This document shows positions 12,417-39,356 of a DNA stretch of 64,000 nt, piece after piece. The stretch is from Paragordius varius (lineage: Eukaryota > Animalia > Nematomorpha): positions 7,378,001-7,442,000 of the forward strand of contig OZ176050.1 of NCBI GenBank assembly GCA_964247055.1, written 5' to 3'. A program made the translations under genes and the position numbers. The notes beneath the pieces are model-generated. The model was not told the DNA's origin, did no database searches, and was given only the letters and a program-made list of their open reading frames with translations. Within the stretch, counting starts at the first letter, position 1, and every line of letters begins with the position of its first letter.

Positions 12417-15400
12417 ATGGTTAAGATACTGATTATTATAATTCATTCCGTATCATGGCGGATTAATACCCAATGTATGTTTTTTTAAATCTCATTTATA
12501 TAATTTAGGTGAAATAAGTAAAACCGAAATCAGAGTGGTTTCCTAATTTTGGAATCGGAACCAGTACCGAATTTCGCTAATTTTAGGAACCGGGTTAGGG
12601 TTTTATGTGGTTCCGATTTGAAGCCCTACTTTTGCCAAATTTAATCTCTACAGGAGTAAATAGAAATGCTTTGATTGATGACGGGAGCTCATTATGCAAC
12701 ATTCAATATTACACATAACTATAATAATAATCTGTTTAAAACTCTTATTAATTGTTAACTAATGATTATACTAACATTAAATGATCAAAGTTGTACTTAA
12801 CATTTTTGCAGACTGGGCTTGACGCTTTTATTTAGCACAAAACTAAAGCAGTCTTTTATGAAATTAAAAGATATGGCTATATTTTTGATACTAAATCCAT
12901 GCATTATAAAATTTTATTTTAATAAAAAATACTGTTACGTTATCAAGTCATTGGTTATCTAAAACGATTGATTTTCATAGCTATAAAATTTTAATTAAAA
13001 TTAGACTAATATCTTTTATTTTATCATAATACATATGTTCATTTACTGATAAAATCCTCATTTATTAATTAAAAAATTATCCGTTTCCACTGCCTTAACC
13101 TAATATAATATATTTTCATATCTAGTGCTCCCAGCCCTTCCGTTAAACACAGATGCACTGTTAACAATTGCTCCCGTTTTACCAGTAAATAATTTGGTTT
13201 CAAGCTTGCCTGTAGTTGATAGCTTAGTACCAGCTGTAACCTCATTATTAGGTAATTAATATGGTACGTTACTATCATCTATTTATATTCAAACGTAACA
13301 TTTTTCATTTAGACACAACACCTTTGCATTCACTAAACATTATTTCCCTCATTGATCCTTTTTCGATTTCCTGGTTATTCAGACCATTTGCAAATTTTAT
13401 ATTTATTTTTATGATTTTGACAGAATGAAAAAATTATTATATAAGTTTCTTAATTTAAGTTCATAGCGAGTATTTATTTATAACACTTTTTCAACCGAAC
13501 GCAACATTTTCTCAAGCAAAGGTAGTTTCCATTTGTTAACTTGTAAAAGATGATATGATAATATAAGAAATGTGAAAATGAGTTATTTATTTGGTTTTTT
13601 TTAGGGTTTATATATAGTAATTTTAGTTGTTCATAATTTGCATTATATCAATAAAATTTCAAGTAACAAAGGATATAATATTTACATATTACACAAAAAA
13701 TATAGAAAATAATACAATTCAAATAACGGTGAAAGTTATGATATACAACCAAGGTATGTATTTCACATTTGCATGTAACACAGAAAATGATATAAAAACA
13801 AAGTATATCTTTCAGATTTGCATAACACCATTCAAACGTAAAAATGTTGCGTTTGGTTTAAAAAGTGTTGCCTTTGATTGATAAATGGTATGAAAACAAA
13901 AGATGTCGGTTTATTATTCCAAATTTTTAATAAAAAGATAATAAAACCACCCTTATGAAGGTCAAGCCCTTCCCAAATTTTTGAAACTCGAAACAGGATG
14001 CTTGACCAAGCAATCCGGAACCAATTCCTGCGTATTAAAATCTGGAGGTTTTGTTCCAGTCAGTCACTTTTCGGTTCAAGTTCCGCTGAAATGTGTTTAT
14101 ACGAAGAATCAAACAAAAAGAAAATTCATAAAACTTTTTTTTAATGTTTTACCCCTAAAACAAAACCAAGATAAAAATAATAAAAAATTTAACTTTGTGA
14201 TTTTGAGAAAGCGCTCTATGCATTATGATCCTTTGCAAAAGTTAACATTGATTGTTAAAGTAGCTTATTAGATTAAATTATCTTGTTATTGGTCTGCCAA
14301 AAGGACTCTTTATTAACTACTCACAAGAGTGTAAAGATTTTTTTGGTTCCAAAACGGTTTAACGACGTACTGATTCAATTTCCTGGAGTTTATCACTTTT
14401 CATCTTGAACAATTATAGTGGAATCAATTAAAAAAATGATTTGAAAAAAATTACTACATTTGTCTAATATTATATTAAGTTTATTATTTTATTTGACGAA
14501 AATTTAAAAACAAAAATTTATTTTACGGCTCTTTCAATTTTACATTTTTAGTATCACGGATTATCAGCACTTTATTGATATACTTTCTTTTCGTTCAACG
14601 GCATAATATATACCTTAAAAATTTATATCTAATTTATCAGGGCGGTTTAGAATCATCCAGATACATAAATTCAATCTAAAAATACGTTCAAAATAATGTT
14701 TTATAGTAAATTTAAGTTATATGTTTGCGCCGGCTGCATTATTGTTATTGCTAAATGGTGGAAAAATAGTCCTTATATTAACACTATATTTATAAACAAA
14801 TATTTATTAAAACTTATGTAAATAAAAGTATTCATCATATTTGTTTTTATACTATATTGTCTCTTTGCTAATAGAATATGCCCAAATATGAATTTATAAT
14901 AGATATTCAATTTTTCATAATTTTCTCATATATATATGTATATATATAATCATTTTTAACATTTGTTATCCAAGGTAATGTTCCCATCGTCCCGACTCTT
15001 TTGGGCCCTTCTCTCACAGCATCATCTGCGTCAAATCTAAACGGAAACACTCCATCCCTTCTATCAACCGTGCAATCCAACAATAATAATAATAATCAAT
15101 CACCAATAAATGGTGGGAATGCCATAACAACTCCTGTAATTCCTGTCAGTCGTAACGTTAGGCCAATAAAGATTATAGCTAATAGAAGAAAACGAAAGCC
15201 ACGACCCACCAAATCTATGAGGCAACGAAGAACCCGGCCTGCTAAACAGAGAACTTCCCGTGCACCTCGTAAAAGGACGCCACAACTTCCGCTTAAAAGG
15301 ACACCTAAAAGCTCGATTCGAAAAACACCTCGTACCAAGGTTAAAACCAGAGGTATGACAAAGCCCAAAATGATCAACAAAAGACGGAAAATGCGAATTA

Positions 15401-15420
15401 CTCCAAGACCTCAAGCTTAA
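12417..15420 (+). CDS. Uncharacterised secreted Val/Pro-rich protein with Arg/Lys-rich tail, paralogue A (209 aa)
   Basis: join(12417-12474, 13126-13251, 14975-15420) = 630 nt, both introns GT-AG and phase 1. MVKILIIIIHSVSWRINTQ|LLPALPLNTDALLTIAPVLPVNNLVSSLPVVDSLVPAVTSLL|GNVPIVPTLLGP...PVSRNVRP...KQRTSRAPRKRT...RPQA*. Exon 3 corresponds to ORF 15001-15420. Confidence 0.75.
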
Positions 15421-15859
15421 CATAAAAATATATAATTCAAATATAATTTTGTAATTTGGTCTAAATCTAAATGTCATTTTCTTCCAAATTAATAAATGAA
15501 AGGCGTGCACAACTAGTATAAAATTGTCACTTAATCAGCGGATATAATTGTTGGTATTACATTAAATATCATAAATTAGCATAACAGAAGAGAAAATTTT
15601 ATTTGGTAATAGCATTAAAAGCGAAAAAAATATCTATATTCCGATAATATTTCGCTTTGCTGGATACCCTATCTGGAATAAGGGGATATAGCTATATCTA
15701 CTTATAATAATATACATTGACCAGTATATAGTATATGTTGGTTAGCCAAAATATACATTTAAAAATAACACAGTATTTTTTATCCCAATAAGTCAGGAAG
15801 ATTTGGTTTATTGGAAAAAAGGAGTAATCGATAATTTAAATAGGTAAAATGTTGGTTTA

Positions 15860-17250
15860 AATAAATGCGGAAAACGTGTGAGCCCATTTTCCAAAACAAG
15901 GAATATTTTCAATCATTTATTTATGCCCTGATTATTATCGAACCACTTTTTTAATTTAGCGCCCTCAGTTAAGCGACACTTTTTGCGAAAATAGAGACTT
16001 ATAACAAACACATTTCCCCAATATTCGTGTCTTTAAGCAATTTTCTAAAAAACGTGTTTACACAATCTATTTCAATTAAAAATTATTGTTTTTTTTAGAT
16101 ATGCCCAGTTACAGTTGGACTTTTTTGACTTAGCCCCATTATTTACCCACTCCCCCATAAAATGACATTTTTATTAAACGTATTGAGACAAAAATTTCAT
16201 TACCGGTTTTCTTACAGTTGCCAAGCCGGGGTGTACCCCCTAATGCCCATATAAATAATACGCTGCCTGCTAGTTTTCAGAAAACTTATGAGCCAATATG
16301 TATTCAATAAGATGAGATATTTCCCGTATAAAAAATTTATACCGAGCTTTTGTTAATTAGACACTGGATAAAACTCCACGCCCCAAAAATGTGCCATCAT
16401 ACAAATATATTTAGCCTTGAATCATTTTTTCAAAGGCATAAGGAATCAACTTGGATTATATCAAATCATATTTAAAACAAAAAATTTGGACGCTTTTTTA
16501 ATATGGCCGGGTACCTATTCTGTGAAATGCGAAATTATTTAATAATACTTTGGGGGTTTTAAAAAACCCATGAGACAGTGTTTAATAATGAATCAACAAT
16601 GGTTTTAGATCACATTTAAATATCTTAATGCATAAAATGGCTGCTGGGAAAGCTGGACCAACTTGAAGTGTTCAAGGACAAATTTGAAAAGCAGATGGTA
16701 TATAAAATAATGTTAGGCAAGCGTTTTTTTGGTTGGGAGCTGAGTAGATCCACACCTTTAAATTCCCCACCATGACATACTGAGGATTTTAGCTCAGGCA
16801 ACACTATCTAAAATTAGTACTAATATAAATACAATAAATAGTAATCAGGCGCTTTTAAAATAAGGCCGCTGGGTAGGGCATCACACTCTGTAAAAGGCGA
16901 CACCGTGTAAATATGACATGACTCCGAGTCGCGTTTTTGACAAAACTATGAGGCCTTATAAATTCAGATTTTTCTGCATACGCTCATAAAATTCAGTAAA
17001 GTGCTGTTTTTTTAACCTGTAGGTTAGGTTTTCACCCCTATGAAAGCCATTTAATAAAAAATCTGGCTTTGAAGCAATTTATTTTTGGTTTCCTGCCCAG
17101 ACAAAGTCATAAATTCTAGATGAGCGTATTTTTTATATGCTGCTTGGCAGGGCGCAACCCGCTTTATAATGACATATAAAAATAACGTAGCTAGGGTTTC
17201 AATAATGTTAGTGACATCAATATAGAAAAAATTTAATGACCGCTTTTCTC
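15860..17250 (+). repeat. Diverged composite repeat with internal ~160-bp units, related to 49200-50760
   Basis: Shares motifs with the 49-50 kb array: CGTGTCTTT.AG.CAATTTT, TTTTCAGAAAACTTAT, GGCTGCTGGG and CCCCAAAAATGTGCCA. Boundaries are approximate. Confidence 0.5.
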
Positions 17251-19127
17251 AAATTTAATCAATTTTAAATACGCCAATAAATATTATGGCTTGGAATTTT
17301 TAGGGAAGCCATAAAATATATATTTCCCTAGTGAAGACATGACCAAGAGTTTTTTAAATAAGTATATGGCTAGACCTTCCTACCTTATATAGTGTGCGCC
17401 TTTGTACATAAAGCCATGTTTATGACTAAATAATTTTTGTATTATCGATTATAATATTGTCGACTGAATCACAGATACGCGCAGGACACAGTTAGTATTT
17501 TAGATAATAGAATAAAATGTTAAACATTTGGTTTTTATAATTATTTATTAATTTTACGTGTTGTGTAAATATGCGTCCAAATCAATAATTATTAATATAA
17601 ACTTAGATATTTTATATTGAAACTCAATTATCGATGATAGCGACGAAATGAGTGCATTTTGAAAGAGCATCCTTTCTGAAAATAGTCCTATTTTTAAATA
17701 TGTGCTTTTGCATTCTCCCCAACATGTAGGAAAATTTTAATTATTTGCTATGTGCGGATATATTTTATTTGCTTAAAAGATAATTTATACAGAAGAGGAT
17801 TTAACATTAAGAAAATCAAAGTGTTTCACTATAATCGGCATAATCACAATTCAAATAATATTTTTTGTATTGGTTTATGTGTTCTGTGGAAAAACGTTAC
17901 ATAGATGCGATTTTTTTTGTATTACCACGAGAGTCATATGCTCCTACCTTAAACTTTCATATGTTCGAATTTGGAAGCTGCTGAAGAGGAGCGTAAGCTA
18001 ATATTAAACAGTGGCTCGATTACTGATTAGCCCAATGACAAATAAATACAACTTCAAAAACGCGATTATCAGCAACTTATGTTTTTTCAAAAACACTCTT
18101 TCACAATAAAAAAATGGTTAAGCTTTGGAGCATTAATGAATAAAAAAATCTTTATTGTCTATTCAGAAAATTGCGTCAAAGCCATCTAAAATAATTATAG
18201 TATCAACAAATAAACTTTGAATATAAATTAAAAAACTCGAAAACGCCTACAAGCTATTGAAAGACCCAACTTTACGCAAATAAAAATAAATATTATTTAA
18301 AAAATTATCACATTGTTAAGGATTTTATTATAGGTAAGAGGTCTAAAAGGTTAGTTAAAATTTAAGGAACTAAATCTGTCCTAACGCAATATAAGAAAAC
18401 TAATTTTTAAAGTATTTTAGATTTTTATACCCACGTTGCTCAGCATATAAATTAATAAGAACTAACTCATCGTATAAATTTATAATCATAGAAATTAATA
18501 TTTATTTTTATTGAATAAAAATGATAATAAATGGGATAATTAAATTAAACTTTTATGTTAACAAAAAATTTGTGATTAAGTTAAATTTTGCATATGTCCC
18601 AATCGAAATAATTAAATAAATAAAAATTTATGAATAAAATAACAGTGAATGGTGCATTCAATATGGTGAAATTCATTAGCCTTTTCTTGCCGGGCGCCCT
18701 AAAATATAAAAAATATGATAAAATTAAGAAATTTTTATTATTAAACTATTGTATTGATATTATTTAATCTTTTCTATACAAAAGAATGATAATTTATAAT
18801 TAATTTTGAAATTTGTGCTACATATGGAGACCATATAATTGCATCGTTAAACTATTCCAGATTTTATAAAATCATACATATATCTTCTTAAACGCATTAT
18901 ATTTAATGACAAAATTGCTCGATATATGATGCCCTAAATGAGTGGTCACCAGAACAAGGGCCGAAAAAATATTTTTTTTATCTCAGGGACAATAATTCTG
19001 ATAAAAATTAGATAGACATTTGCAAATATTTATATATATAGTTTAAATAGTACATTAAAAAATTTAATAAATAGCCATAAAAAAACACTTTTCGGGCCGC
19101 AGTCTAAATAAAACTGCCCTAGATTCT

Positions 19128-21057
19128 TTAAATATAATAATTTTCTCTATCTTTACCAACAAGCAAATAATATGAACAAAATATAAAACTTGTAAGTTTG
19201 ATAGGTGCGCGGGAAGTTCTTTTCCTTGGGGCTTGAGAAGTGCGACTCTTTGCTTTCTTGGGAGGCGGAGGGAATCTTCCACGGGATGGACGGGCTCTTG
19301 GAGAACCGCCGGCTCCTCCGGTTCCGCCTGCCGCATTACCAGCAGCTGGATTGATGACAGCTGGAGGGATGACCGGACCGGCTGTTGGGGCGACCGGATT
19401 CAAAACAGCTGGTGGCACAGTCACTGCACCTCCTCCTACGATGGGATTCACGACAGATGCAACCGTGTTTAAGAGGGAAGGGACGACCGGTAAGTTATTG
19501 ACGACACCACCCACATTACTCACCAGGCCGCCAACGATGGATGGAACCGTAACTAAACTTCCAACATCGGGCACTGCCGGGACAGCAGGTATTAAACCAG
19601 ACGTGTCTACTGGTAAAACATCTAAAGGTACGGCAGGAACACCCGGGACTTCTGGGACTAATGGGACTGCTGGGACGTCTGGGACTAATGGGACTGCTGG
19701 GACCAGTCCACCCACTATTAGGCCCCAATAGAATATTATATAAACAAAAATAAATAAAGTATTATGTATCTCTATTCTTTTTTTGCAACAAAACCTTAAA
19801 CTAAAACGAAATTCCTACTGAAAAATTTTTGAACTGCCAAAATCGATTCTTGCAATCTACTTTTTATATGACAAATAATGTATAGAAATTTTATTAGTAA
19901 ATTGTTAAAGATTTGTAAAATATTCTAACGATTTCCAAATTAAACTTACCAACATAATTTTTATTACCACTTCATCACCCTTTCACTTTTTTGTCAGCGA
20001 TCACACTTTGGGGTAGTTTTATTTCCCAGAGCTCCTCTTGTAAACTTGAAAGTTATTTTAGTGAAAATTTAATTATGAAACATTTTTCTATATTAAATAA
20101 AGGAGCTAATATTTTTAACAGTTTTGTGACTTCAGGAGTCTAAAATTGGAAGAGTTCCAAACCATGATTAAACTAAACAGCTGATTTATAACCAAATATC
20201 AAGTTTGCATGTAAAATGCTACCACAAAGCTTATGTCGTTTTTTTACATTTTGTAACAATATTATACATATATATGCCTCAAATTAAAAATTTTAAAAAT
20301 GGCGGCAAAAAAGTTTGAGATGAGGATTTTTTAACATTTATATTTTTTAAAAATTTTTATATAATGCACCTTAAAAGTTAAAAGCATATTTTTTAATTCA
20401 GCTTAATATTTTTAATATTAAATAAAATATTTAAATTACAAATCGCTCTGGGATATGAAACTACAAAGGGTCGTGGAGAGTTAACAATAAATATCAAATA
20501 TTTGCTGGTAATATATATTCTAAAGATTTTAAAGTTAGTTAACATATTCTAATCATAATAATTTTTACTGTTGTGTTAGGATTTTAAAAAAATAGCGGCA
20601 TTCATAAGAAATAACCTGAAGTTTTCGTATAATTTTATTAGTCAAATACCTCTTTTTATATCCAAATTTTATATTGCTCTGGGATATATACCCGAAAAGG
20701 TAATGAAGTGTCAATTTAATAAAAAAAAACAATACGTAAATTTATTATAACGATAAAATTTTATTTATAAGGTTGTTACTGCAATTTATACTTTAAAATT
20801 TTTTAACATTTAAACGGCGAGAGGATGATACCGATATTTATACAATTAATATTAAAATTATAAAAAAAAAATTAAGTAAATTTGATTCCAAAGTTCTTAG
20901 TATTACGTTTTCAAATGTTAGTTAAACTATATCTAAATAAAGTTATTAGAATTGGAAATATATATATATTATGGTATAATTGGAAATTCTTACATTGTCC
21001 ATAAGTACAGCGGAGAAGTGTAAAGGATAGGAAGATACAAGAATATAAAAGTTTCAT
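19128..21057 (-). CDS. Uncharacterised secreted Val/Pro/Gly-rich protein with Arg/Lys-rich tail, paralogue B (~216 aa)
   Basis: complement(join(20994-21057, 19128-19714)), phase-1 GT-AG intron of 1279 nt. MKLLYSCIFLSFTLLRCTYGQ|LGGLVPAVPLVPDVPAVPLVPEVPGVPAVP...GGTGGAGGSPRARPSRGRFPPPPKKAKSRTSQAPRKRTSRAP. The last ~25 codons may be intronic, so the true 3' end is uncertain. Confidence 0.8.
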
Positions 21058-22100
21058 CTTTTAGCTTTTAGAAAAGTAAAAAATGTTAATTAATTTTATA
21101 TGCAATATTAGAGCTTATTTATACCTTTTTTTGTTCAATAAGACGGCATGCATTAATATAAACATTTTTGACAATCACATATAATTGGCAACACCTAAAT
21201 AACCTGACATTTTGACATAAAATTTATTTTTAAATGTCACAATTCGATGTGTCCAAATATTTGGTTTAAATAGATGATTTTCGATATTTTTAAATCACAA
21301 AATTGATGACCTATTTATTTAGCGTTATATGTGTGTACTGTCAATTTTGTTTAATATGATAAATACAAAATTTTAGTTTGACAACCTTATCGTTGATCTC
21401 TTAAATTTATATATTGACCTTGAAAAAAAATATTTTTATGTGCTAATAAATATTTAAGTGTAAGTCACATTTCATGAATCAAAATCAAAGATATTTGAAC
21501 ATAAATTAAAATTAAATTTTTATAACGATAGCCATTGACAACATGATGGTTTTAAATAACTTATCAATAATCCATAATATTTAATTATTCTCCTAAATTA
21601 TATAGTATATAACTGTGATATATAAGATCACCTCGGTGGATGTCGACTTCTTGCAAAATGTAAATAAAACTTTTCCATAGGTTGCGATTTTTAGTTTTAA
21701 TCTGCCTGTGTTGCCATTTGGCCAACAATAATGTGAGTAGGCCAGCTTAAATGTGCGTGTATTAGGGATAAAAGAAGAAATATTATATATTAACTATTAA
21801 AAAATACACTGATTCTTAAAATTAGTTTAAAACCGGAATTGGAATTGCAGGTAACCTAACCCGTTATCTGACATTTCAGCAGGAACCGGTTGAGTTGGGT
21901 TGGAACCAAAATGATTTCGGTTCCACTTCATTAGAACACACTTATTCCATTTTTATCTTAGAAACTACGCCGGTACCGGTTTTTAAAAGGGAGTTTGAAT
22001 CCGGACCTCCAAAATAAGTAATTCTCATATAGCTTTATTTTTAAAAAATAAGAGTTATTGTTTATATTATTTAATATTGATTGTATCAAAACATTTTTTC

Positions 22101-22944
22101 CAGGGCTTGGAAACGGACCCGCCTGGAGCCGGAACCCGGTTCCTGCGATTTTAACAAAAACCGGTTCCATTGGGATGGAACCAACGCGGTTCCGGTTCCA
22201 ACCCTTCAGGAACCAACCCGGTTCCAGTTCCACCCCCTTAAAATTCCCATGTGATTTTTATTATAAAAATTTTATTTTAATTTTTAAAATTGGTTTTACC
22301 ACTACACATTACAACATACTTTAAACCTAGCGGCTAATATTAGCGATACTCTCTGAATTATGGACGATTCGGCTCCCTAAAATAACTAAGCAGAACTCAA
22401 GTTTATTTATAATACATATGTTCGTATATATAGGTCTCCGTTGAAAGGAATTTTTGACCCTTAATTTTCTATTTTCAGACCTGAGAAGCAATTTGACCAG
22501 CGAATTGCTTGGTGCAATAATTAAATATAGTTAAATAAATTTTTTTAGATGCCATACTTAATATAACTCTCATTTTATACCTTTGTAATACATTTTCCTA
22601 TTATATTTTATAATTTGTTTCAATTATTATGCTACACTATATTTCTTTCACAATACATTTGGCAATTCATGATAAATTTGATTTAATTTTGGTTGTGTTA
22701 TTATAATAATAATTTTGTAAATCATTTAATTAAAAGTCAGGAACCAAAAATGGAACCCGTTCCAAATGTAAAAAACCCCCGGAACCGTTAAATTTTTAGG
22801 AACCAAGGCGGTTCCGGTTCCAAAATTTCAGGAACCGCCCGGTTCTATTTTTTAATTTTTAAGAACCAACGCGGTTCCGGTTCCACTTGTTCAGAAACCG
22901 ACCCGGTCTCGGTTTTACATTTTTTGAACCGGTTCCAAGCCCTG
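22101..22944 (+). mobile_element. hAT-superfamily internally deleted element with transposase C-terminal remnant
   Basis: 12-bp TIR CAGGGCTTGGAA/TTCCAAGCCCTG and a perfect 8-bp TSD ATTTTTTC (22093-22100 and 22945-22952). Subterminal GGAACCGG arrays are present. The internal 22430-22535 segment translates, with a stop and a frameshift, to VSVERNF*...SDLRSNLTSELLGAII, like the hAT dimerisation domain. Related fragments lie at about 12520-12630, 13990-14090, 21830-22010 and 23950-24060. Confidence 0.85.
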
Positions 22945-23136
22945 ATTTTTTCTAGTTTTCCCATCAAAATAAAATGCCCATCATATTGCTGAAATAATAT
23001 TTTTAAAAAATTTGACCTTATGATAATTTCTTTTCTATCTGATGATATGGAATTACCATTCTGTTTGAATATCTTACCTTTAATACTTGAAAAAAATCAC
23101 AAACATATTATTTACGTAAATTTTTTCCTTCTATAC

Positions 23137-23449
23137 CGGGGGTGTCCAACACCAGTGGCTTCCCCAGCCGCATCTTAAACTCAAAACACAGCGAGCCGCA
23201 TTTGAAATAAAAATATCGGCATTCATATAGAATTCAATAGATTTCAAACATAAAACTGTAAAATGTAAACCTACATAGCAATTTTTTCTAGTTCTTGCCG
23301 GCCAATTGAATAAACCAAATTAAAAAAAATTGTTTAAAAAATGTTAATTTAACAAAGATTTTATGAGCATATAATTACTAATTAAGGATATCCAGATTTT
23401 TCGCCGGCTACACATAAAGTCTCGGAGGGCCGCATTTAGGGCATCCCTG
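23137..23449. mobile_element. Small hAT-like MITE
   Basis: Imperfect TIR CGGGGGTGTCCAA / TTAGGGCATCCCTG. Flanks TTCTATAC and ATCTATGC match 6/8, consistent with an aged 8-bp TSD. A related end lies near 62455. Confidence 0.55.
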
Positions 23450-25074
23450 ATCTATGCATTAAGAACATTCACCTTATTAACAAATCTGGCACAAAATCAA
23501 ATAGGGTCCGTAATTAAATATGCATAACAGCAAAAAGTAAGCCACACTATATAACAGTGGGGCTCAAACCGCGGCCCACGAACTGCATGAGGCCCTCAAG
23601 TTTTTTTCGGCCTTTGATTATGCAAAAATATTAATATCGTTACATTAGTGGTGCATATTACGGCTCACAACATAAATACAAAGTTTTTCTCGCTAAATTA
23701 TTTATATCTGAGGAGTAGTCAACGACCAAAATGCTTGGTGCACTCATTTATTAATATTAAATAAGAATCTCATCCATAGGTGCGATAGTTAATACAAATA
23801 CAATTAACATTTACCATTGTACTACTTTTACATTTAGCTATTTGATTTTTCTAATATTTATGTTTTGATTCACAATCATTGCTATTTTGCGCTATATTAT
23901 AATAAAAATGTTGTATGAAAATCATTTAACGAAAAAGAATAAAAATAGAACCGGTTTCAAACGTAAACGATTACGGAATCATCAACCACACTGATTTTTA
24001 AATTCTTAGGGACCAGGCCGTCGGTTTAGGTTCCACTTTTTTTAAACCGGCTTAACCTGCTCACAATTTTAAAAGAATGGGAATGAGTTAGAATAGATAG
24101 ATGAAAATAAATATTTAAGTGGAAGATTTATAATTTTGAATTGGAGGGTATGGAGTGATAATAAAGGTAGATAGATGATTGATGGAAACATTTTGACTGT
24201 TTCACTATAATTGTTATTCTAAAACAAGGTGCTCAACTATTTTGAATTCTTAAATACATATCATGCGTTATAAAACCACCTAAAGCTATAATTAATTTTA
24301 TTGAATATGTCTTGGTTCAAATAGCCAACCGTTTTTTGCTTCTAGTTATTGATTTTCCCACCAAAATTAAAAGTTCCGTTTTCACTTTATTCACTTTTTT
24401 ACTGCAAGGTTGTAATCCAATTTTATTAGTTTGCGAGCTGTCTGAATCATCATATAGTATCATTTGAATATCGCGAATCTATACAGCATTGTCCCACTTC
24501 CTATTTCTTCCATGTATATAATAAATAGCAACGGACTGATTACTCCCGACTGATACACAGCCTAATGTTTTCGAATAGAATCAAGCACCCCTTCCATTTT
24601 AACTTTGGTATGGCGAGATCCGTTTATCCTTTTCATTTTATAAAATTATTAACAGTGATTCCCAACCTTTTTTGTTCACGCCTGACCAAAATGGAAAAAA
24701 ACCTTGCCACCCCCCTCCCCTCCACCCAAAAAAATAAAAACGCAAAATTCATATAATAAAAAATTATCAGCAATTATCAAAATATTTCATATTAATCTTG
24801 ATAATATGAACCTCAGATCACCTTAACCTTCAATTTGGTACACCTTTTTCCATATTTTCACGCCCCTTTTGGTGAACCCTCCTTTTATTTGAGAATTTAT
24901 GGTGTATTATAAATTGTTATAATTTTTCGGGAATTAGCTTTCTAAAAATATTTAGTAAAAAAATGTGTGCTGATATTGCGTTTTACGAAATCACCACAAA
25001 AGTGCAAAATAACGCTTTTATCACTCATGAGTCCTGAAAACAAAAGCACCATGAGAATCCTTATATATATTTTA

Positions 25075-27094: not shown

Positions 27095-27127
<33 letters not shown>

Positions 27128-27498
27128 ATCCCCAAATGTAATATTTCTGCATTTTCACCATATCATATGAATACATATAGAGAATTTCGAAAAAGGCGTA
27201 TAATAAGTAAAGTATAAAATTGATATTGAGCCACAATTAAAAAAAAAAGACTGTCAGTTTTCATAAATTTAACTATATTCCAATATCCGCAATAAAAATT
27301 GTTTACTAAATAAAATTAAGAGCCCCACCCAATTTTTCCATTGGCTTTATATAATAAATTAAGGATGATTAAAAATATGTTTTGTTTCTTAAAATTTGAC
27401 AATCCTTTTTATTTTAAATCGCTGTTCTCAATTTCAAATTCTAACTTTACATATGTTAGGCCTAACATTTCAAACATATAGTGATTGATAAACACACG

Positions 27499-28229: not shown

Positions 28230-28260
<31 letters not shown>

Positions 28261-29676
28261 AATATATGATAGCCAAAATAAAATTAATATCACCGCATAT
28301 TAACAAGTTTATTGGATAAGAATTGACGCCAAGTACAATTTTTTAGAAATATATCCTAATAAGTTCTTCAAGGACCCTCTGAAAATTTTTAAAATCCATA
28401 TCGATAATGTTTTGCGTTCAGAGTTATCCTTGTGGTACATATTATCAAAAAAAATTTCGTTGAGACGCTTTTATATATTGTATTTAATTTCCTTCAACCT
28501 AAAGTCGACAAAAATGCGATATTTGATTTTAACTAGCCGAAAAATTAAAATACTTTTATTCTAAATTGTCAACCGTATTTATTTTTGATATTCATTATCC
28601 TGAAGCTTTTAGCTATCAAACGTTATATAATTTATAAAGCACTTTAGCTGCGCACCTTATATACAAAGCCTATTACTATTTAAATGGTTAACAAAATAAT
28701 GTATATATATGTAAGATAGTGAATACACTATTCTTACCTTATTAAGTAAGATTAAATATAATATTAATAGTTAAATAATGCCGTTATATTTTAAGCTAAA
28801 TGGAACAGTCAATGATAAGAAAAACAAATAGAAAAGGGGTCATGATATCTATATATTTTAAAAAGAGAAAATATATAAATAATATAAAGGTCTACCTTAA
28901 CTTTAAGTTTAAAGCGAGAAGCCAAATCCTCCAACAAAACAATTTTGTTTGTCTTAATGTAATCCAAAAATTCTTGAAACATTTTTGAAGTCTTAAATAT
29001 ATATAATAAATATACTTCAGACAAATCAGCTTGTTCATTGTAACCTTCGTCCTCTATTGTAAAATGTTGCTTCCAAGAATTGTATTCTTCCTGTTCCTTC
29101 CTTTTAATTTCTTCCAATTTTAATTTTTCTTCCAATTCCTATTATTTTAAAATGTAATATAATTATATAGATTAATTTTCAATTATTACAATTTTTTCTT
29201 TAAGTTTACGGGCGTTTTCCTCTTCTAAGAGTTTAAGCTTCTCAAGTTTTTCCTCTTGCTTTTTCTTTTCTTCACGCTCCAACATTTCTCTCTATTATAA
29301 AAACATATTTTTTACCTCGCGTTGTACCTTCTTTTCTGCTTTCATTTCCAGTTTTCTTTGTTTTTTAACACCTAATTTCTTGGAATTCGCTTGCTCTGTA
29401 TCAGATGTCTCTGATTGAGATATATATGGTTGCGATCTTGCATTATTTCTAACCAAACGACTACTTAAAGATGACACATCGGTATTATCTTCATCCGTGG
29501 TAGTTGCGATGTATGAGGATGTAGTATCTACCAAAATAACCTTTAAACAAACCATTTAGTCCTTTTAGTAATTTTTTTACAAACCATGATGCAATTAGGA
29601 TGACTAGTGTGCATACTATTAATAAAATTTTATATATTGATGGATCAAGCGAAAACGCTGTATTTTCCTGATCCAT
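27499..29676 (-). CDS. DDRGK1: DDRGK domain-containing protein 1 (UFM1 pathway adaptor), ~283 aa, 6 exons
   Basis: complement(join(29553-29676, 29316-29527, 29190-29291, 29016-29138, 28896-28991, 27499-27693)) = 852 nt. GT-AG introns are 25 (alternatively 40), 24, 51, 24 and 1202 nt. The protein has an N-terminal TM anchor, KKLGVKKQRKLEMK, a coiled coil, EFLDYIKTNKIVLLEDLASRF and the signature GVFDDRGKFVYVT. Confidence 0.93.
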
Positions 29677-31008
29677 GTGGTTTGATGTTTGCAACAAACT
29701 AACACCGTATGGAAACTTCGGCAGATTTTAATGGTTTTGATTTAATTGTAATTTTAGTTAAAAAAGAAGAAAAAAATCGAACTTCTAAATGTGTATCGAA
29801 CGGGAAACAAATTAAATTAATACCGTTAAAGACCATTAAGGATTATGCCGGGTATGATTTTTTTTATTATAGAAAACATTGCCATTTACTTTTACCAAGT
29901 GCTAAAATTGTTAAGGATCAGGAGCTGTTACACAATTTAATTAATTTTATAATTCAAAGTATTAATAAAAAAAGTATCATAGTATAAAATTTTTTAGGCC
30001 CTAATAAAGACACTTCAATTACATCGAAGTAGATAATTATTTAAATTTTAGTGAGTTCGAGTCGCTTCATTCTTCCAATATATTAAATAATATAATGAGC
30101 ATGTTAACGCCCGAAGCTAAAATTAATTTAGCGAATCTCTCTAAGACTAATGCTTTAATTGGTAAATTTACGAGTTTTAACCTTTGTTTATTTATAGATT
30201 ATTTTTTGCGACTGTTAAACACATGAAACCCTTATGGGCTGTATAATAATATTTAAAAGCCTTTTAAAACAAAAAATTTAACCGACCATAAATTTAAAAT
30301 CATTTCCTTATCTCCTATAAACTAATAGGCTCATGCTGATCATCAGCACCTTATATATGTAATTCTACTTTTTTACTAGAATTTAGTGGTAGCCAAATAT
30401 TATTAAAGGGCCGAAAAAATATTTTTTTTGTCTCAAGGGCCATCCACCATATAATACCGATAAATATTTTGAATACGCAGATATTTATGTTTTAAAAAAG
30501 TACATCAAAAAAATTTAAAAAAATGGGGGCCATAAAAATTACTTTTACAGCCGGATGCCGCTGATGGGCCGCGGTTTGAATACCATTGCTATAATGTTTT
30601 AAGGTTAACATTTCCCATATACTATTTTGTGGATTTAAAGTCTTCTCATAATGAGCCGAATTAATTGTTAAATTATTTTAATATATATATATATAATAAA
30701 ACTTAATTTATAAATTATATCAATTTTCTAATTATTAATTACTATTATTCTACTATATATATATTTGATAAAATTGAGTTTTGACTGTTTGACGGTTGGT
30801 TTACAGGCACTAGAAACTAGTATAATGGAATCTTATGCTCCAAAAGAATATAACTTGAAAATCCAACCAATATTTCGAAAACTGTAAACTACTTAGTGAT
30901 CAGCATGAGCTCAATAGTTTGTAAGCACTATTTATTTTGTATAAAGTTCATTATGCCAAAGGGTCTTTCAGGTCCACATTACATCATAATTAATAATCTA
31001 CCATATAG

Positions 31009-31340
31009 GTTTGGAAAATTCTAGTGGTACAGGCATTAGTACAGCTCTCTCCACTAATTCGGTGAGAGAATCCTTGAACCATGTAATGGCTATGAAACGA
31101 TCGTTGAGTAAAGGCAATCAATCTACGGATGCCCGACCTTTTGCTTGTTCCTGGCCTGATTGTGAATGGCGATTTCCTAGCGTCGAAACATTAAGTCGTC
31201 ATTACAGAAAACATACGGGAGAAAAACCTTTTCAGTGCTACGTTTGTCAAAAACGATTCACTCGAGCCGATCATATGCGATCGCACGTTAAGCGACACGC
31301 CAAACAAAATAATAAGTTGGGTAAAGGGGTAAGTGAGTAG
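31009..31340 (+). CDS. KLF/Sp-like C2H2 zinc-finger protein with two fingers; 5' exons unresolved
   Basis: FACSWPDCEWRFPSVETLSRHYRKHTGEKPFQCYVCQKRFTRADHMRSHVKRH matches KLF fingers 2-3. An in-frame stop at 30987-30989 means an acceptor (31008 or 31024) or an internal ATG must be used. Confidence 0.8.
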
Positions 31341-32135
31341 AATTTTGAAAACAAATTATGAAAGAAATATTTTTGGACAAAAATTGACATAAACCATCTT
31401 TTTTCTGGGTTAAAATAGCTAGATTTTGAATATTTTTATAAGGGTTTATGTCACATTAAAATTTATTTATATCTATGATTTCATTGTCACAACTATAATA
31501 CTTTATGACTCGGGTGCTCAATAGAAAATGGTTTCGCGGGCTGCTGATTTTTTAAAATAATACAAATGTGCATTAATATATATTCATTTATACATTGGAT
31601 GTATTTGATAATAGCCTTAATTTTTGTTAGTATTGTGTTCATAATTGTAAATTATTATTCAGCTTTGCCTCATTTAAAGTAAAAAATTCGATTTAGCTCT
31701 CTTTAAATGGATATTAAAACAGTAAAAAGATTATTTTAACCTTAAATAAATGGTGTTTATTAAACAAAATAGATACAATTCCAAATTAATTATATGAATA
31801 TTAAAAATATATCAAAAGTCAAAATATATTTTTAATTTATTAAGATTTAGATAATATGTATTTCCAATTGTAAATTTTTGAATTTTTCTCGGGCGGTGAA
31901 AATAGTTAGCTTCATGGCATATACTTTTATTTAAGATGATAAACTATAATAAACATTAAAAACGCAATAAATGATACTGTTAGGGATACAAAAATAGGAA
32001 ATGGAATTATAAATAATAATGAATATGTATACAATTTTAGCCGCAATAATATTCACAAATCCGGAGCCTGTTATGGAATAATAAATCATTGTTGCGCTGT
32101 GTATTTATAATATAATATTCAAAATGTAAATATAT

Positions 32136-32168
<33 letters not shown>

Positions 32169-32649
32169 ATAAATTTTATGCTACAGTAAATTATATATAA
32201 TACAATAATCATTTAATTGTTCTCCAATTTATACTATATTTTAAATTGAACATTTTTCAATTGCCCTATCCAATCATTTTAATTTGCAAAGGTTTATTTG
32301 CACAAATGAAAAATTTTATTTATAAAGTTCAAGATTGATAATTATTTAAAAAATTAAAATACATTGTATCAAAAATAACTTATGTTTGCGATAGCTTTGG
32401 GGCATAAATATTCAACAAAGTTCTAGATTTAGGCTTGAGACTTGATTATTTGTATTGACTATAATACATGTACATTTAAATTTTTTTATAGGTTTTGTTT
32501 AGTTATTCAACTGGTTACATACAAGAATGTAGTCAGCAGATAAGATTAGATGCATGTGGTCAAGTCTCTTAATAAAGAAACCACACCCCCTCCCTCATAA
32601 TGAGCCTTTTTTAAAAATTCAGCGTTTATTAATTAATAAAATCATCTGA

Positions 32650-33332
32650 ATTTCATGCATTTTGGTTTTATGAGTATTATGAGCACACATTCTAAACGAC
32701 TACTTTGTGGGTTACATGAAATCTTCATCCCAAAATAATCATTTAGTCGGGTAATATATGAATGCCGGACATTTGTCAAACCATCATCTAACGTCTACTA
32801 ACTAGCTGTTCTGCGAGAGTTTTACCCCATTGATGAAAATAGAAAATAACATGCCAGGAGAGTACGACGGCGGAATAATTTTCCAAAGCGATTTTAGGGT
32901 GTTTTTCGCTCATTTTACGGATCATTGTCATGTAGTATAATCACTTTGCTATGGCCTCAGACTCACTCCCGTCGTTTTGGTGTATTTAATCATTTGTTGA
33001 CGGTTGCGTGGGAAATAACGGTTTCACAGGGCTCCAAAAATGCACAATGTGACTTCATTCCTGCCAGACAGAGTTCATGATCTTCATATCGTTTGTCCTT
33101 GGTGAACCGGCTTCAATGATTTTTTTCGCTCTGATATATTACAAAATTAAGTCGCTTTTCATCAACGCAAAGCTCATTTTATTGCCCAGTTTGGTCTTTC
33201 CCATTGCTCGTAACTGTCTACTGATCGTTTTTTGTACATGTAATGCTTCTGTCATTTGCCGTTGATTTTAAGCTGTCGTCTAATAAATAACTCTTGCTCT
33301 TCATCGCCTTCGTAGTTGTGTAAATTTATCAT
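32650..33332 (-). mobile_element. Decayed mariner transposase remnant
   Basis: Frameshifted minus-strand fragments QMTEALHVQKTISRQLRAMGKTKLG, ...KVIILHDND... and ...IIPPSYSPG... correspond to the mariner HTH, HDNA and YSPDL motifs. Confidence 0.75.
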
Positions 33333-33969
33333 AAAACATACAATGATGCATTATTTATAATTGAGGGGATAATAATAAAAACCTTTCACAGTGCGCAAAA
33401 AATAGCCTTATAAAAGATATATATTCTAATAGATAAATGGGTCAGTATTCTCATGGTGGTTTTGTTGGTTATAAGAAATTTTTATACCCTTTTTGGTGAT
33501 AGCTCTGTTTAAAAAAATCGCAAAATTAGCGCGTGCCAAAAACATTTTGGCGGATTACAGTATGCATTTTAATATCTGTTAAATTTTATAGCCAGTCAAA
33601 TGAAAGAAATGGTCATTAAATGTTAAAAATACTCTCCACAAAATTATTTCGTACCGCACATATGAAAGAGGATTGATGTGAGAACGTAGGCTTATTGTGA
33701 TGGATATTTTGTAATGCTAAATATTGAGAATATTATAACAATTTATGTTAACCTTTGAATTTATTGTTAAAACGTATTTAGATGCGTAGTTTGTGTTAAC
33801 CTTTTCATATTTCCTCAATTTGGATGGTAAAAAGAAATGTAGATTGAACACATAAAATATCATTTTTAAATTTTTTCCTGAATAAGATATTTTTTTACAG
33901 ATTTAGTAGAAATGATTAAAGTGCAGATTAATCTTATTTAGTGCTCTTTCAGACATTGGATGTTTAAGG

Positions 33970-34720
33970 TGGTTCTCAAAATATACATACAAGGAGTTTG
34001 AAATAGAGCCAATTATTTATCGAGATGGCCGGTTGACAGATCAATGCCTATGACTAAGATTATGCAGCTACCCGATACCTGATATTTTTAAATTGCCACA
34101 CGTGCTGTTAAGTATAGATGAGATTCGAAAAGAAACTGCGTTAAATCCGATAATATACAAAGCAATTAAAGGGTTAAACAACCATGTTATCCAGAACTTG
34201 AAAGGTTTCGTATAGACGAGTTGTTATATTAATATGGCTTGTTAAGTTTAAATGATCGGATTTTAATTCCGAAGCCCCTCCAAAAGGAGGTGGTGAGAAA
34301 CCTATACAGCAATCGTAACAACGTAGAGACCATGAAAGCGATGGCCAGATTGTAAAAGCCAGTAATCAGTGTGAATCCTGCCATAGTTAGCCGGTAACTC
34401 AACCCCTTTTTAGTGGGATTACAATGTTGCTGTGTGGGAGCGTTTGCATATTGGTGTAGAACCGCCAGTCGGTTATTATTGATTTTTGTAATCGATAGCG
34501 CCTCTAAATGGGCAAAAGGGTTTACTAAAAAGGTAACCGCACCAAATGTAATCAACAAGCTAGAAGAAAATTTTGCATCATTTGGTTTTGCAAATGAGAT
34601 AGTTAGCGATAACGTATCGCATTTAAAAGAGTATTTTAGGTCAACCTTAAGTAAGTTAGAGGTGAAATGTAAAGGTACCCCCTACCATTCTAAAAGCAAT
34701 GGGATGGTAGATGGTTAGTA
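33970..34720 (+). mobile_element. Decayed Ty3/Gypsy pol remnant (RNase H end, zinc-binding and rve integrase)
   Basis: Fragments LNDRILIPKPLQKEVVRNL...MKAMARL and FVIDSASKW...VINKLEENFASFGFANEIVSDN...TPYHSKSNG (ORF 34413-34718), interrupted by stops and frameshifts. Confidence 0.8.
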
Positions 34721-37700
34721 GGTACGATAAAAAATAAATACAAGAGAAAATAAAATAGTGCGATATCCACCCACGAAGGTTTTAACACCAGCCTATGGGC
34801 GTATCGTTACATTTGATTCGAAATTTCATATTCTTTATTGACATTACAAAATTTAAACCTATTGCATGGGAAACTCTATTTTATTATACAAATGATTTCT
34901 TGAGTAAATTTTCAAGACATCTTTTTGTCATTTATATAAAGCTCTTTAGGACACAACAATTATACGATGCCAACAGACTTCGATCATACACCACATTCGT
35001 TTTCAATAGATCCACACTCGCACCATCCCATATTCCCTTTTAGTTCAAATTTTAATACAACAATAATTCTGATGATTAGGCATAATTTGTTTTTCTAAAT
35101 TAGGTAAAATTCATTTTTAGAAAACTTCATGTTATGATGAATATAAACTTTTAACAGTTTTATATAAATCATTAAAAGTATATCAATATATTAGTCAAAT
35201 CATTTTTACCCCCTTTCCCAAATCTAAAAATTTGAAAGTTTTTAGTGACATATTTGACTTAAACAACTTAGGATTGTGTGCTCTATATTTTATACAATAT
35301 TAATATATGCTAGATTAAACCATATTTGTAACTACCTGTGTTTTTTTGTATAAAATGAGTAAACATTACCAAATAAAAACGAAACGCTAAGCGAATAACA
35401 AAATGCATTTAACGACTGATATTAGTTTTTCCTGATATTTTCTTAATATAAGGGCAAACATTGGATGGATCTATGTGTTGCTGTCCTGGTCGACTTTTTA
35501 CAATATTATAAATAATAGTTCTCCATAAATTACGGTTTTGTTGTGTTTCGCAAAGGTTGCATTGTTATTTTATGTCAGCTAGTTTTTTAAAAAACCGAAT
35601 GCCGGTTAGCAAGCAAAAAATGGGTTCGTTTTATAGTTTTAGAACTTTTCCAATTTATTTTTGATTGAATGGTTAAATTATAGTTTATTTTTTACTTCTT
35701 TTGTTTTTGTGAATATGAACATATTGTATACCATTATTTTGTTTAATAAATGCCAGGTCCAAAGTCATATAGGTTATTTAAAGAAGAAGTCAACGATAAG
35801 TACCCAGATGATTTTTTTACAGACACTTTATAATCGGACGTTGAAAAGCAAACCACACATATTCCCGCCAAATTATCGCGTCTTTTTTTATTATTCTAAA
35901 TGTCAAATTTGTGTTTGAAAAAGATTCGCGACATGCATCACTTATTCCTTCCTAAGAAAAAGGCTGTTATCAATCATCGTTTTACTGGTAAAATCATATA
36001 CATATTCTATTGATTAAAACAAAAATTTAAAAATGTGAAGTTCAATGCTGTATAGCTGCGAAGAGGTCGAGTGCAAGAGTTAGTGGATGATGTTTCAACT
36101 CATTTCCGGAAACAGATTACAAAGCCAGTATTTTCCATTTTTATAAATTGACATAAAATTCCACAGAATTCCACATCTAAATGCGTATCAAATAAATTCT
36201 AAAGCTAACATAGATTGCTATAATATTCTCAAAATTTAGCATTACAAAATATCCATCAAAATAAGCGAATGTTAATTATCACGTCAGTCCTCTTTCATAT
36301 GTGCAGAAATAATTTTGTGGAGCAGTATTTTTCACATTTAATAAACCATTTCTTTTATTTGACCGGCTACAAATTTACTTAACAGACAATAAAATGCATA
36401 GTGTAGCGTTTTTACTAAAAATATAAAATATATTATAAAAAGAAAAAATTAATATATCATATTTGGAATTCGGCTCTAACTCAAAATTGAGCTGTTATCT
36501 TGTGATAAACGCAAATAGTCCGAAATCGAGCGATAAGAGTCTTATATATAGCTGCTAAATTTTGACACCAAAAAAAGTTTTTTTAAAAATAATGATACTT
36601 TGCTGAAAAATTTATCAGCAAAATATGTTTTAAGATACTTTATGGTATTTTGCATGTTGAAAACGTTATAAAAACGCTGCGATATATAATAATTAGGGGA
36701 TGATCATAATTTTCATCAGCTCAGGTTTAAAAGATGTTTTTGTGTCTGAGGCGATAGTAATGTTTAGTATCGTTAAATTCAAAGTTTTTAAAATATCTAA
36801 AATGTATGTATTTCCTTTTCCAACATGATGTAATATAACATAAAGCCTTAAGAAATTTCGCTAAAAATTAGATTTTTCATGTATCCCTTTTAATAAAAAA
36901 CTTTTTTTTGATATACTTCTTTTCAGTCAAATGCAACATTTTTTCCAGCAAATGCAACATTCTTTCAGCTAAATGCAAATTTAATCAAACGCCATAGTTC
37001 AGTTATCTTTGATTTAAAAAATGTTGTCTCTTGAAAAAAAAGTTGGATTTGTTTGAAAAAAATGTCTCCTTGTTCAAAAAAACGTTGCGCTTGGTTATAA
37101 ATGTTGCATTTGGTTGAAAAAATGCTGGCGAAATGTGTTACTTTTAACTAAAAATAGTATTATATAATTTAGCTATGAGATTTTTGGAATGAACATTTTT
37201 TACCAAATAATGTGCCTTATTTTGCGATTTTTCGATATGAAGCAATTATTATAAAAAGGTAACTTCTTTAAATAACTTGCAACCTCACCAAGATAACAAT
37301 GCAATTTTTAAAAAATATACATTTTATCAGGAGATTTGTCACCCACCGATTTCGTCCACTGTTTTATCAAAAATTTTAGTTTATATGCAACATCGTACCA
37401 AGTTTCAAAATTTTTATTTTTAGAAGTTCCATGTTATTAAATAATAGCTATTCAATGGTACCCCTATCCTTACATGTTTGATAACTCAGGCTTTATAATT
37501 CTGTGCCAAAAACTTTATAATCTGATCATTATAATTTAATTAGATCAATATCAGGACGTTGTTTTAAGTTATTTAAGCTTTTATATAACAGATATGTAAG
37601 AGTTTTGCTTTCTTATACATAATCACAAGACCTGAAATTTCTAAAAACTGACGTAGAGAGCCTATAACCATAAAAGAAAAGGCTATTTACCGATCATCAT

Positions 37701-38058
37701 CCGAACTTAAATCAAAGCTCTTTTATTTTAAAGACGTTATTAAATAAAAATATTTTGATTTATATTACCATAACTACGTTATTTATAAAAAAACTGTCAA
37801 AAATACAAGAAAAAAGAATTGAAATGCGCAAACATTTTTGACATTTTGGCAACACAAAAATGTCATTTTAGTCACAATTCATAGGTATGACATACAAAAA
37901 CAAGGTTGTCATTTGATTTATCATTGACGATAAAAATATTCAATCAATATTTTGGTAATAAGCATTAATTGCCAATATATATAAACAGAACTGAATTAAC
38001 ATTTGTAATAAAGGATATTTATTTCTTAAAATTTTTTAATAATACAGATATTTCGATA

Positions 38059-39356
38059 ATGACTAAAATACTATGGATTGTTTTTGCTCTATTCTTACGC
38101 CTACAAAAAACCGATGCACAACGTAAGTTTAAGATTTAATTATATATAAAATGTAATTTCCCTTTAAAACTATCCATTCTTACAAATTCATTTTAGGTCC
38201 ATAAATAAAAATACATTAACATTTTGGGGTAGTTATACACATGAACCATATAACTTTTTAAAAATCTGTGTTAACAATATCCATATTACTAGTTGATTTT
38301 ACATTAATAAATATTAATACTAACATTTTGGTGTAGCACATGAATCAGATTAAATTTTTAAATACCTTAAGCCGTGGTTTTATTAAAAACATGCACTCTA
38401 TTTTCATTTACTCTAATAATATAGAATGTATCCTGTTTTATTATAATATATCTAGTGGGCGGTATATTGACACCAGTAGGCAACATATTGGGTGGAGTTA
38501 CGAATGCAGTAAATTCTCTTGTTACCAATGTGCCGATTGTGGATCCACTTGTGAGTGCAGTCGTAAATCCTGTGACTAACATTTTAGGGGGAGTCGTGGG
38601 AGGAGCAGTTTCAACCGTTTCAAGTGTTATAGGAGGGGCCGGCGGTTCTAACACTGTAGCCGGAGGGGTGACTCAAGGCCCTGCTAACACTGCAGCTACT
38701 GCTGGTAATTTTTGTTTTAGGATAAAAACAACTTATCAAAAATGTGAATGCGTTGTTGGTAATATACTGACTCGTATTAATATTTTCAGATTGGTTTTTT
38801 ATTATCTTCCTAAAATAGTTTATAAAAGAGGCGAAAACTAATGTATCATAAATATGTGATTAAGGTGCTGGGGCTGGGGGTGCAGGTGGAAACGTAGCTC
38901 TTCCTGTTTCAAGAAACGTCAGACCCTTCCCCCAAAATAATGCAAGACTTAGAAGTACAAGAATGGTTTCAACCCGAATGACAAACACTCCCAAAACGCG
39001 ATCCACTCGTAACTCAATATATTTTAAACATTTATTTGGCGGTGTTGCCATCTTTAGATAAAGGATTAGTTAAAAATAGGTAATACAGCTAAGTATCATA
39101 AAATATACGAATTTATTAGGCATCAATTTAGAAAATAATCAGACTTTTCAAAATTTGTACCATATTTCATTCCAGCCTTTCTTCATTAGAAAACAGTTTT
39201 TTTTTTCGAATACGGTTATAATTTATAATTATTATTTTAGAAATGATGAGGACACGTTCTAGCAGAATGGCTAAAAGAAGGACCTCGCGGGCTATGGCCG
39301 TTAGATCTAGACGAACTACTACTATGATGATGTGGGTTAATCATCGTCCAATATAA
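38059..39356 (+). CDS. Uncharacterised secreted Gly/Val-rich protein with Arg-rich tail, paralogue C (190 aa)
   Basis: join(38059-38122, 38456-38704, 38865-39008, 39241-39356) = 573 nt, all introns GT-AG and phase 1. MTKILWIVFALFLRLQKTDAQ|LGGILTPVGNILGGVTNAVNSL...GGAGGS...|GAGAGGAGGNVALPVSRNVRP...TRST|QMMRTRSSRMAKRRTSRAMAVRSRRTTTMMMWVNHRPI*. If the last intron is unspliced, the ORF stops at 39061. Confidence 0.8.

Follow-up and report, generated by a model that had tools for sequence, protein, structure and literature searches.

In Caenorhabditis elegans the pharyngeal cuticle is built by several lineage-restricted families of secreted, low-complexity, phase-separating proteins, and the families IDPA, IDPB, IDPC, APPG, NSPB and FIPR are proposed to phase-separate in the extracellular matrix (PMC9629831). 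Tropoelastin provides a second point of comparison, as its hydrophobic domains coacervate and its C-terminal, RKRK-bearing domain engages heparin. The present analysis concerns three genes, here called A, B and C, in a stretch of 64,000 nucleotides (nt) from the hairworm Paragordius varius (GenBank assembly GCA_964247055.1, contig OZ176050.1, positions 7,378,001 to 7,442,000, forward strand), referred to below as the window. Alignment and codon comparison indicated that A, B and C are true paralogues, that is, intact and anciently duplicated protein-coding genes, and a secreted family in which a hydrophobic block is joined to an acid-free, polycationic tail is very probably real.

Like the C. 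elegans families (PMC9629831), A, B and C are small (approximately 190–215 residues each), of biased composition, predicted to carry a signal peptide and to be largely disordered, and they likewise form a small, lineage-restricted paralogous family that is an orphan by alignment. The combination of a signal peptide with long low-complexity disorder that characterizes the nematode families is also predicted here, from the signal-like first exons, the biased composition and the low confidence of the structural models of B and C described below. In contrast, the nematode families are not described as strict successions of an uncharged hydrophobic and an acid-free polycationic block, and molt-linked expression and cuticle localization have been shown for them, whereas A, B and C are known here from their genes. 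No positional similarity between A/B/C and the nematode families was detected among 1.84 billion protein cluster representatives or in word searches.

The A-B-C cluster spans less than 27 kb in a very AT-rich (adenine- and thymine-rich) animal genome. Exon borders were placed by script after reading the three loci, and all searches, folds and composition counts were made per exon. The features of the three genes, in window coordinates, are as follows.

12417–12474, plus strand: gene A exon 1, 58 nt, 19 codons plus one base, signal-peptide-like with a terminal Gln
13126–13251, plus strand: gene A exon 2, flanked on either side by phase-1 introns, encoding a hydrophobic Leu/Pro/Val block and recovered by the genome profile search
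14975–15420, plus strand: gene A exon 3, Asn/Ser/Thr-rich spacer followed by a 92-residue tail (37 Lys+Arg, no Asp or Glu)
15142–15165 and 15250–15267, plus strand: gene A exon 3 motifs PVSRNVRP and RTSRAP
15418–15420, plus strand: gene A stop codon, with AATAAA 71 nt downstream
21057–20994, minus strand: gene B exon 1, 64 nt, 21 codons plus one base, signal-peptide-like with a terminal Gly-Gln
19714–19191, minus strand: gene B exon 2, confident part, 136-residue Val/Pro/Gly/Ala block followed by a 38-residue basic tail
19319–19302, 19292–19281 and 19220–19203, minus strand: gene B exon 2 motifs GGAGGS, RPSR and RTSRAP
19645–19703, minus strand: gene B tandem repeat, a 27-nt unit near the start of exon 2 that encodes VPAVPLVPD/E twice
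38059–38122, plus strand: gene C exon 1, 64 nt, 21 codons plus one base, signal-peptide-like with a terminal Ala-Gln
38456–38704, plus strand: gene C exon 2, hydrophobic block rich in Gly, Val, Asn and Thr, with the periodicity of an amphipathic helix, including GGAGGS at 38632–38649
38865–39008, plus strand: gene C exon 3, GAGGAGG, then PVSRNVRP at 38903–38926 and the first part of an Arg/Thr/Met-rich tail
39241–39356, plus strand: gene C exon 4, rest of the tail, including RTSRA at 39279–39293
39354–39356, plus strand: gene C stop codon, with AATAAA 102 nt downstream

All six introns in these models begin with GT, end with AG and lie in phase 1. The first exons (58–64 nt) close on a Gln codon plus one base and the second exons open with TG, so that the split codon is Leu, followed in B and C by Gly-Gly, and the first intron has the same position and phase in all three genes. 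The exon architecture proposed in the original prediction, which was made from the letters of the window and a list of its open reading frames (ORFs), was therefore reproduced. Gene A has an alternative start at an in-frame upstream ATG (12405), which gives a form 12 nt longer. The predicted extent of gene B held from 21057 to 19191, but its 3′ end is doubtful, as the ORF continues to 19128 with approximately 20 last residues unlike the rest of the family. No AATAAA was found within 389 nt of the stop codon of this long ORF, and a small piece rich in guanine and cytosine (GC) near 18699–18676 is a possible candidate for the last exon.

BLASTP comparison of the exon translations linked A exon 3 to B exon 2 (8e-9), A exon 3 to C exon 3 (3e-4) and B exon 2 to C exon 2 (2e-3). 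The peptide PVSRNVRP, which had been reported for A and C and is present in both, is encoded by different codons at six of its eight positions, including AGT and TCA for Ser and CGT and AGA for Arg, changes that each involve several base substitutions. RTSRA, reported for all three genes and also found in each, has different codons at all five positions between A and C and again at all five between B and C, while the other five frames of the motif DNA blocks showed no comparable identity. Motif identity in one frame despite these codon differences indicates purifying selection on the protein in that frame and strand, and the restriction of conservation to a single frame rules out the antisense open frames of the GC-rich exons. 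GGAGGS, described earlier as identical at the DNA level in B and C, has five of six codons identical between the two genes, including GCCGGCGGTTCT. No DNA-level similarity or shared promoter elements were detected among the three loci beyond AT-rich noise, and the duplications are therefore old. The copies have strongly diverged outside the short motifs, in agreement with the fast divergence claimed at the outset, and the proposal of a three-gene family is now supported by BLASTP, by the shared place and phase of the first intron and by the codon evidence. A TATAAA upstream of each ATG was dropped as evidence, being too common in DNA of 73% AT.

The same results bear on the view that A, B and C are non-functional, namely open frames that are in decay or were never expressed and that lie in DNA of locally high GC content (exon GC 0.40–0.48 in comparison to ~0.27 for the window), a view that we consider very improbable. 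In its favour, the gene models are predicted from sequence alone, and in the GC-rich exon regions both strands have several open frames. However, the motifs are conserved at the amino acid level in one frame through many synonymous changes, the three multi-exon models are intact with canonical splice sites and consistent phase, and polyadenylation signals follow the stop codons of A and C.

The leaders of all three genes consist of Met, a Lys within three residues and a hydrophobic core of 7–13 residues, and end in X-Gln with Thr, Gly or Ala at position -1 and Ile or Thr at position -3, all of which are small or allowed residues. A scan of 2.4–2.8 kb upstream of each exon 2 for ATG-started, stop-free hydrophobic mini-exons ending at a phase-1 GT returned the predicted exon as the sole candidate for gene C and as the best of three starts for gene A. 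For gene B two candidates with the same ATG were obtained, the alternative being a shorter form, 49 nt in length, with a weaker donor. The predicted mature N-terminus is Gln-Leu in each case, and an N-terminal Gln could cyclise.

An alternative explanation for these genes is that the proteins are not secreted at all, with exon 1 being either misattached or a membrane anchor, and that they act as intracellular basic proteins, for example of sperm chromatin or RNA binding, whose RTSR-type sites would be phosphorylated by basophilic kinases. The tails resemble those of protamines and histone H1 in being acid-free and rich in Arg, Lys, Thr, Ser and Pro, the string R-K-R-T-S fits the AGC-kinase consensus, and the join between exons 1 and 2 is predicted rather than transcript-based. 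We nevertheless give this explanation little probability, since A, B and C all keep a signal-like first exon with a Gln end and a phase-1 intron at the same place, and the leader exon is the only or the best candidate in the 2.4–2.8 kb scanned. Furthermore, exon 2 of B and C has no in-frame ATG of its own ahead of the hydrophobic block, and a hydrophobic block of 100 residues would be odd in a chromatin protein.

For composition analysis the hydrophobic block was defined as exon 2 plus the first 55 residues of exon 3 in A, the first 136 residues of exon 2 in B, and exon 2 plus 12 residues of exon 3 in C. These blocks contain no Lys or Arg, are rich in Val, Pro, Gly, Leu, Asn and Thr, and are not acid-free, having 1–5 Asp/Glu. 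Their grand average of hydropathy ranged from 0.8 to 1.2, with the exception of the Asn/Ser/Thr-rich spacer that opens A exon 3 (its first 55 residues), which had a value of -0.14. Asp and Glu are missing from all three tails, whose net charge is +13 to +37, with Lys and Arg accounting for 37 of 92 residues in A, 13 of 38 in B and 19 of 72 in C. Composition counts thus confirmed the acid-free polycationic tails predicted for A and C and extended this property to B. The prediction that the mature regions lack Cys was also borne out, as none occurs after exon 1 in any of the three, and aromatic residues across A, B and C are limited to one Trp and two Phe, with no Tyr. This near-absence of Tyr, Trp, Phe and Cys argues against cross-linked hard cuticle material and for a soft, transient or surface-active one.

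Tropoelastin and A/B/C have in common that they are secreted (predicted here), with few acidic residues, hydrophobic segments rich in Val, Pro, Gly and Ala, and a basic C-terminus, through whose RKRK sequence elastin engages cells. The nine-residue VPxVP-type repeats of gene B recall tropoelastin, and B is the only member with Val-Pro repeats. On the other hand, the Lys-Ala and Lys-Pro cross-linking domains of tropoelastin are absent from A, B and C, whose hydrophobic blocks are without Lys, as are its hPGhGG repeat style and its C-terminal Cys pair. The basic strings are here spread over 38–92 residues rather than a few, and the three proteins are far smaller than tropoelastin. Sequence similarity to it did not emerge from any of the searches, and the likeness is an analogy of design only.

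Two conserved tail motifs both fit the pattern RxxR, these being RNVR followed by Pro in A and C (RPSR followed by Gly in B) and RTSR followed by Ala in all three, and RRKR also occurs in A. RxxR sites were more frequent than in shuffled sequences, with 8 observed against 3.1 expected in A exon 3 and 2 observed against 0.3 expected in B exon 2. A conserved RxxR site in a protein with a signal-like leader, the arrangement looked for in substrates of proprotein convertases, is thus present as a sequence pattern.

These sites can also be interpreted as those of cationic host-defence peptide precursors, in which convertases would cut at RxxR or dibasic sites to free Pro/Arg/Thr-rich antimicrobial peptides from the tail, while the hydrophobic block would be either the pro-region or another product, active on membranes. 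The order of signal peptide, pro-region and cationic C-terminus is that of such precursors, the RxxR motifs are kept under selection and enriched over shuffles in A and B, and the rapid divergence of the paralogues is usual for immune effectors. The strings KPRPT, TRPA and TPRPQ in A and RFPPPP in B are of the PRP/RPxxR type and recall proline-rich antimicrobial peptides. Apidaecin, drosocin, Bac7, PR-39 and their precursors likewise have a signal peptide and processing sites at basic residues, together with cationic sequence that is free of acidic residues, rich in Pro and Arg and marked by PRP-like strings.

Several features nevertheless make a host-defence role rather unlikely in our view. 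The PRP/PxxP-Arg pattern of antimicrobial peptides is represented by PRP-like strings in A and B, but the tails in which these lie are 38–92 residues long and highly irregular in comparison to typical mature peptides of 18–40 residues. Compared with apidaecin, drosocin, Bac7 and PR-39 the tails are much longer and rich in Thr, Ser, Lys and Met, without a repeated mature-peptide unit, and the large N-terminal hydrophobic block has no counterpart in Pro/Arg-rich antimicrobial peptides, to which no homology was detected. The longest conserved stretches coincide with the motif sites or belong to the hydrophobic block, rather than marking out a defined mature peptide. An acidic pro-region, which many such precursors use to neutralise the cationic part, is missing, and both activity and induction are putative only.

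AlphaFold modelling of B exon 2 with a six-row alignment gave a mean predicted local distance difference test (pLDDT) score of 57 and a predicted template modelling score of 0.18, with helices only at residues 59–71 and 78–88, which coincide with the segment conserved in A, B and C. C exon 2 modelled alone (pLDDT 64.5) showed two long helices. The helical hydrophobic moment of the best 18-residue window was 0.43 in both B and C, a value reached by 0–0.4% of shuffles, and the periodicity of C had its maximum at 100 degrees. The polar face of the helices in B and C is uncharged, being made up of Asn, Thr, Ser and Gly. Overall, the models suggest hydrophobic blocks that are mostly disordered, with short amphipathic helices in B and C.

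Such helices could also belong to effectors that the parasitic juvenile secretes into its insect host, the two-block layout being that of a primary amphipathic cell-penetrating peptide, which would bring the protein into host cells, where strings resembling nuclear-localisation signals could direct it to the nucleus. By this analogy the trio would be a hairworm invention of cell-penetrating effectors, with a fusion-peptide-like helical region and a polyarginine/lysine tail, that aid nutrient capture, immune evasion or manipulation of host behaviour, a proposal that we regard as improbable, as we do the effector explanation in general. Its appeal lies in the match to engineered carriers such as MPG, in which a fusion-peptide-like, Gly/Val/Leu-rich hydrophobic segment is likewise joined directly to a polybasic, nuclear-localisation one, in the strings RRKRKPRP and KRRK of A, in the uncharged polar face of the amphipathic helices in B and C, and in the genome being probably that of a host-manipulating parasite. 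MPG-type carriers, however, are synthetic and 20–30 residues long, whereas A, B and C are natural, approximately 200 residues long and represented here by genes. The argument is one of pure analogy; polybasic strings are expected in any such tail, the tail of B is short, and that of C has few Lys and no classical nuclear-localisation string.

The reading that we favour, tentatively and with less than even confidence, is that of an extracellular coat, matrix or adhesive formed by self-association of the secreted proteins, an argument by analogy with the C. elegans pharyngeal cuticle families and with the design of tropoelastin. The signal peptide would be cleaved to leave a mature protein with a Gln-Leu N-terminus, the hydrophobic block may then drive self-association or coacervation, and the cationic tail may bind polyanions, for example nucleic acid, acidic lipids, or glycans that are sulphated or acidic. 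As possible proprotein-convertase sites, the RxxR motifs would allow the tail to be trimmed or removed once the protein is outside the cell.

A number of observations weigh against an extracellular material. Three members are few copies for a bulk structural material, and with Cys absent and Tyr, Trp and Phe almost so, the proteins do not offer the chemistries by which tough cuticles and glues are usually cross-linked. The amphipathic periodicity of the gene A hydrophobic block was not significant, the hydrophobic core of its leader is short, and the AlphaFold models are of low confidence. Pro at position P1′ after RNVR is unfavourable for furin-type cleavage. The signal-peptide call was made by reading exon 1 by itself, and we infer splicing, secretion and processing of all three proteins from the DNA. 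The probability that lies beyond an extracellular material and its rivals is kept for something else.

The earlier note had also called for a genome-wide check for further members, and a profile search of the whole genome (110.6 Mb in 44 contigs) recovered the exons of A, B and C only. Searches of the whole genome with single proteins and with a back-translated RTSRAP pattern gave nothing above control level, and an additional RTSRAP pattern match on contig 3 was rejected as a chance occurrence in an unrelated short frame. Scanning six exon translations against Pfam-A at E values up to 10 identified no family, the only match, Totivirus_coat, being attributed to chance (E 3.7, 6 bits). With B exon 2 and A exon 3 as queries, word-index protein searches returned no relative and the ESM Atlas no usable match. 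A profile search of PDB sequences also returned no relative, and one of the 1.84 billion protein cluster representatives returned no true relative, as both of its matches, a GC-rich repetitive frame and a bacterial SpaA-type wall protein, were repeat artefacts. It should be considered that the control query of the word-index protein search, the 405-residue first-exon ORF of the neighbouring Msx-like gene, had no match either, and that none of the database searches returned the window's own proteins. A control without a match indicates that this lineage is absent from the databases, and the lack of relatives can therefore not be read as species-specific. The family is unclassified, and its species-specificity is not implied by databases that hold no proteins of this lineage. 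The original statement that no family was recognised thus stands, since no search produced one, while the description as lineage-specific is weaker than it sounds.

Known cuticle families were also considered. An insect cuticle protein family was a first guess and was rejected, as the genome is without a Rebers-Riddiford domain and the mitochondrial genes carry hairworm-type coding palindromes. A six-frame search of an arthropod genome should return many Rebers-Riddiford domains, whereas Chitin_bind_4 (PF00379) was absent from A, B and C and from the 110.6 Mb genome, the control genomes in this search being prokaryotic and also without a match. With regard to nematode cuticle collagen, Col_cuticle_N (PF01484) had no match in the genome at E≤0.001, and the A, B and C translations contain no Gly-X-Y repeats. 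On the mitochondrial contig (contig 44, 5980–10320) approximately ten 72-nt hairpin units lie in tandem just upstream of COX1, and zero-spacer palindromes with arms of 131 and 97 nt were found, the latter inside the ATP6 frame. Palindromes in mitochondrial coding sequence are reported to be peculiar to Nematomorpha (PMC6649704). COX1 itself has six in-frame TGA codons, as expected under the invertebrate mitochondrial code.

The window has a GC content of ~27% and belongs to contig 1 of the assembly. Nematomorph genomes studied to 2024 measured 200–300 Mb (2024 preprint), and the 110.6 Mb assembly, about half of this size, would be an unusually compact hairworm genome. Window genes include a DDRGK1-like exon, a KLF/Sp-type zinc-finger exon and an Msx/Drop-type homeobox gene (58922–60494) whose first exon encodes approximately 400 Asn/Ser/Thr-rich low-complexity residues, and neither transfer RNA genes nor Rfam families were detected in the window. 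The entire A-B-C cluster is bracketed by the arms of an inverted repeat of approximately 1 kb (1–1026 and 43654–44687), which are 87–98% complementary in five collinear pieces and 42.6 kb apart. The left arm lies at the window edge and may be longer, and the pair could represent either a dispersed element present twice in opposite orientation or the two termini of one large inverted structure. Pieces rich in GGAACC/GGTTCC occur in the introns of gene A (12520–12620 and 13960–14100) and between B and the next gene (21826–22321 and 22790–22990), include a 63-nt tandem repeat (22791–22924) and look like a family of small palindromic elements. Inverted repeats of 83 nt (33683–33765 and 36191–36273), 2.4 kb apart, enclose frames resembling integrase fragments of a retroelement or transposon (34232–34715). 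A 167-nt direct repeat (4776–4942 and 56165–56331; 88% identity, 51 kb apart, GC 0.40–0.49) is probably a dispersed short element and had no Rfam match, and four diverged copies of a unit of approximately 82 nt, with 61–82% identity to the reference copy and a spacing of 174–323 nt, lie at 49446–50409.

Analysis of A, B and C demonstrated that an orphan gene can be validated in the absence of RNA data by short motifs that persist while their synonymous codons change. As the evidence now stands, the trio is another taxon-restricted family of secreted low-complexity proteins, of a kind common in under-sampled lineages, and the value of the finding hinges on expression and localization data. If expressed as modelled, A, B and C would represent an unclassified family of proteins in an animal phylum that is among the least studied, with an unusually clean design in which an uncharged hydrophobic segment is joined to an acid-free polycation in a Cys-free and almost aromatic-free protein. 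Proteins of this design are natural candidates for coacervating coats, glues and membrane-active agents, and the family could shed light on the hairworm surface, its egg strings and cysts, or its dealings with the host.

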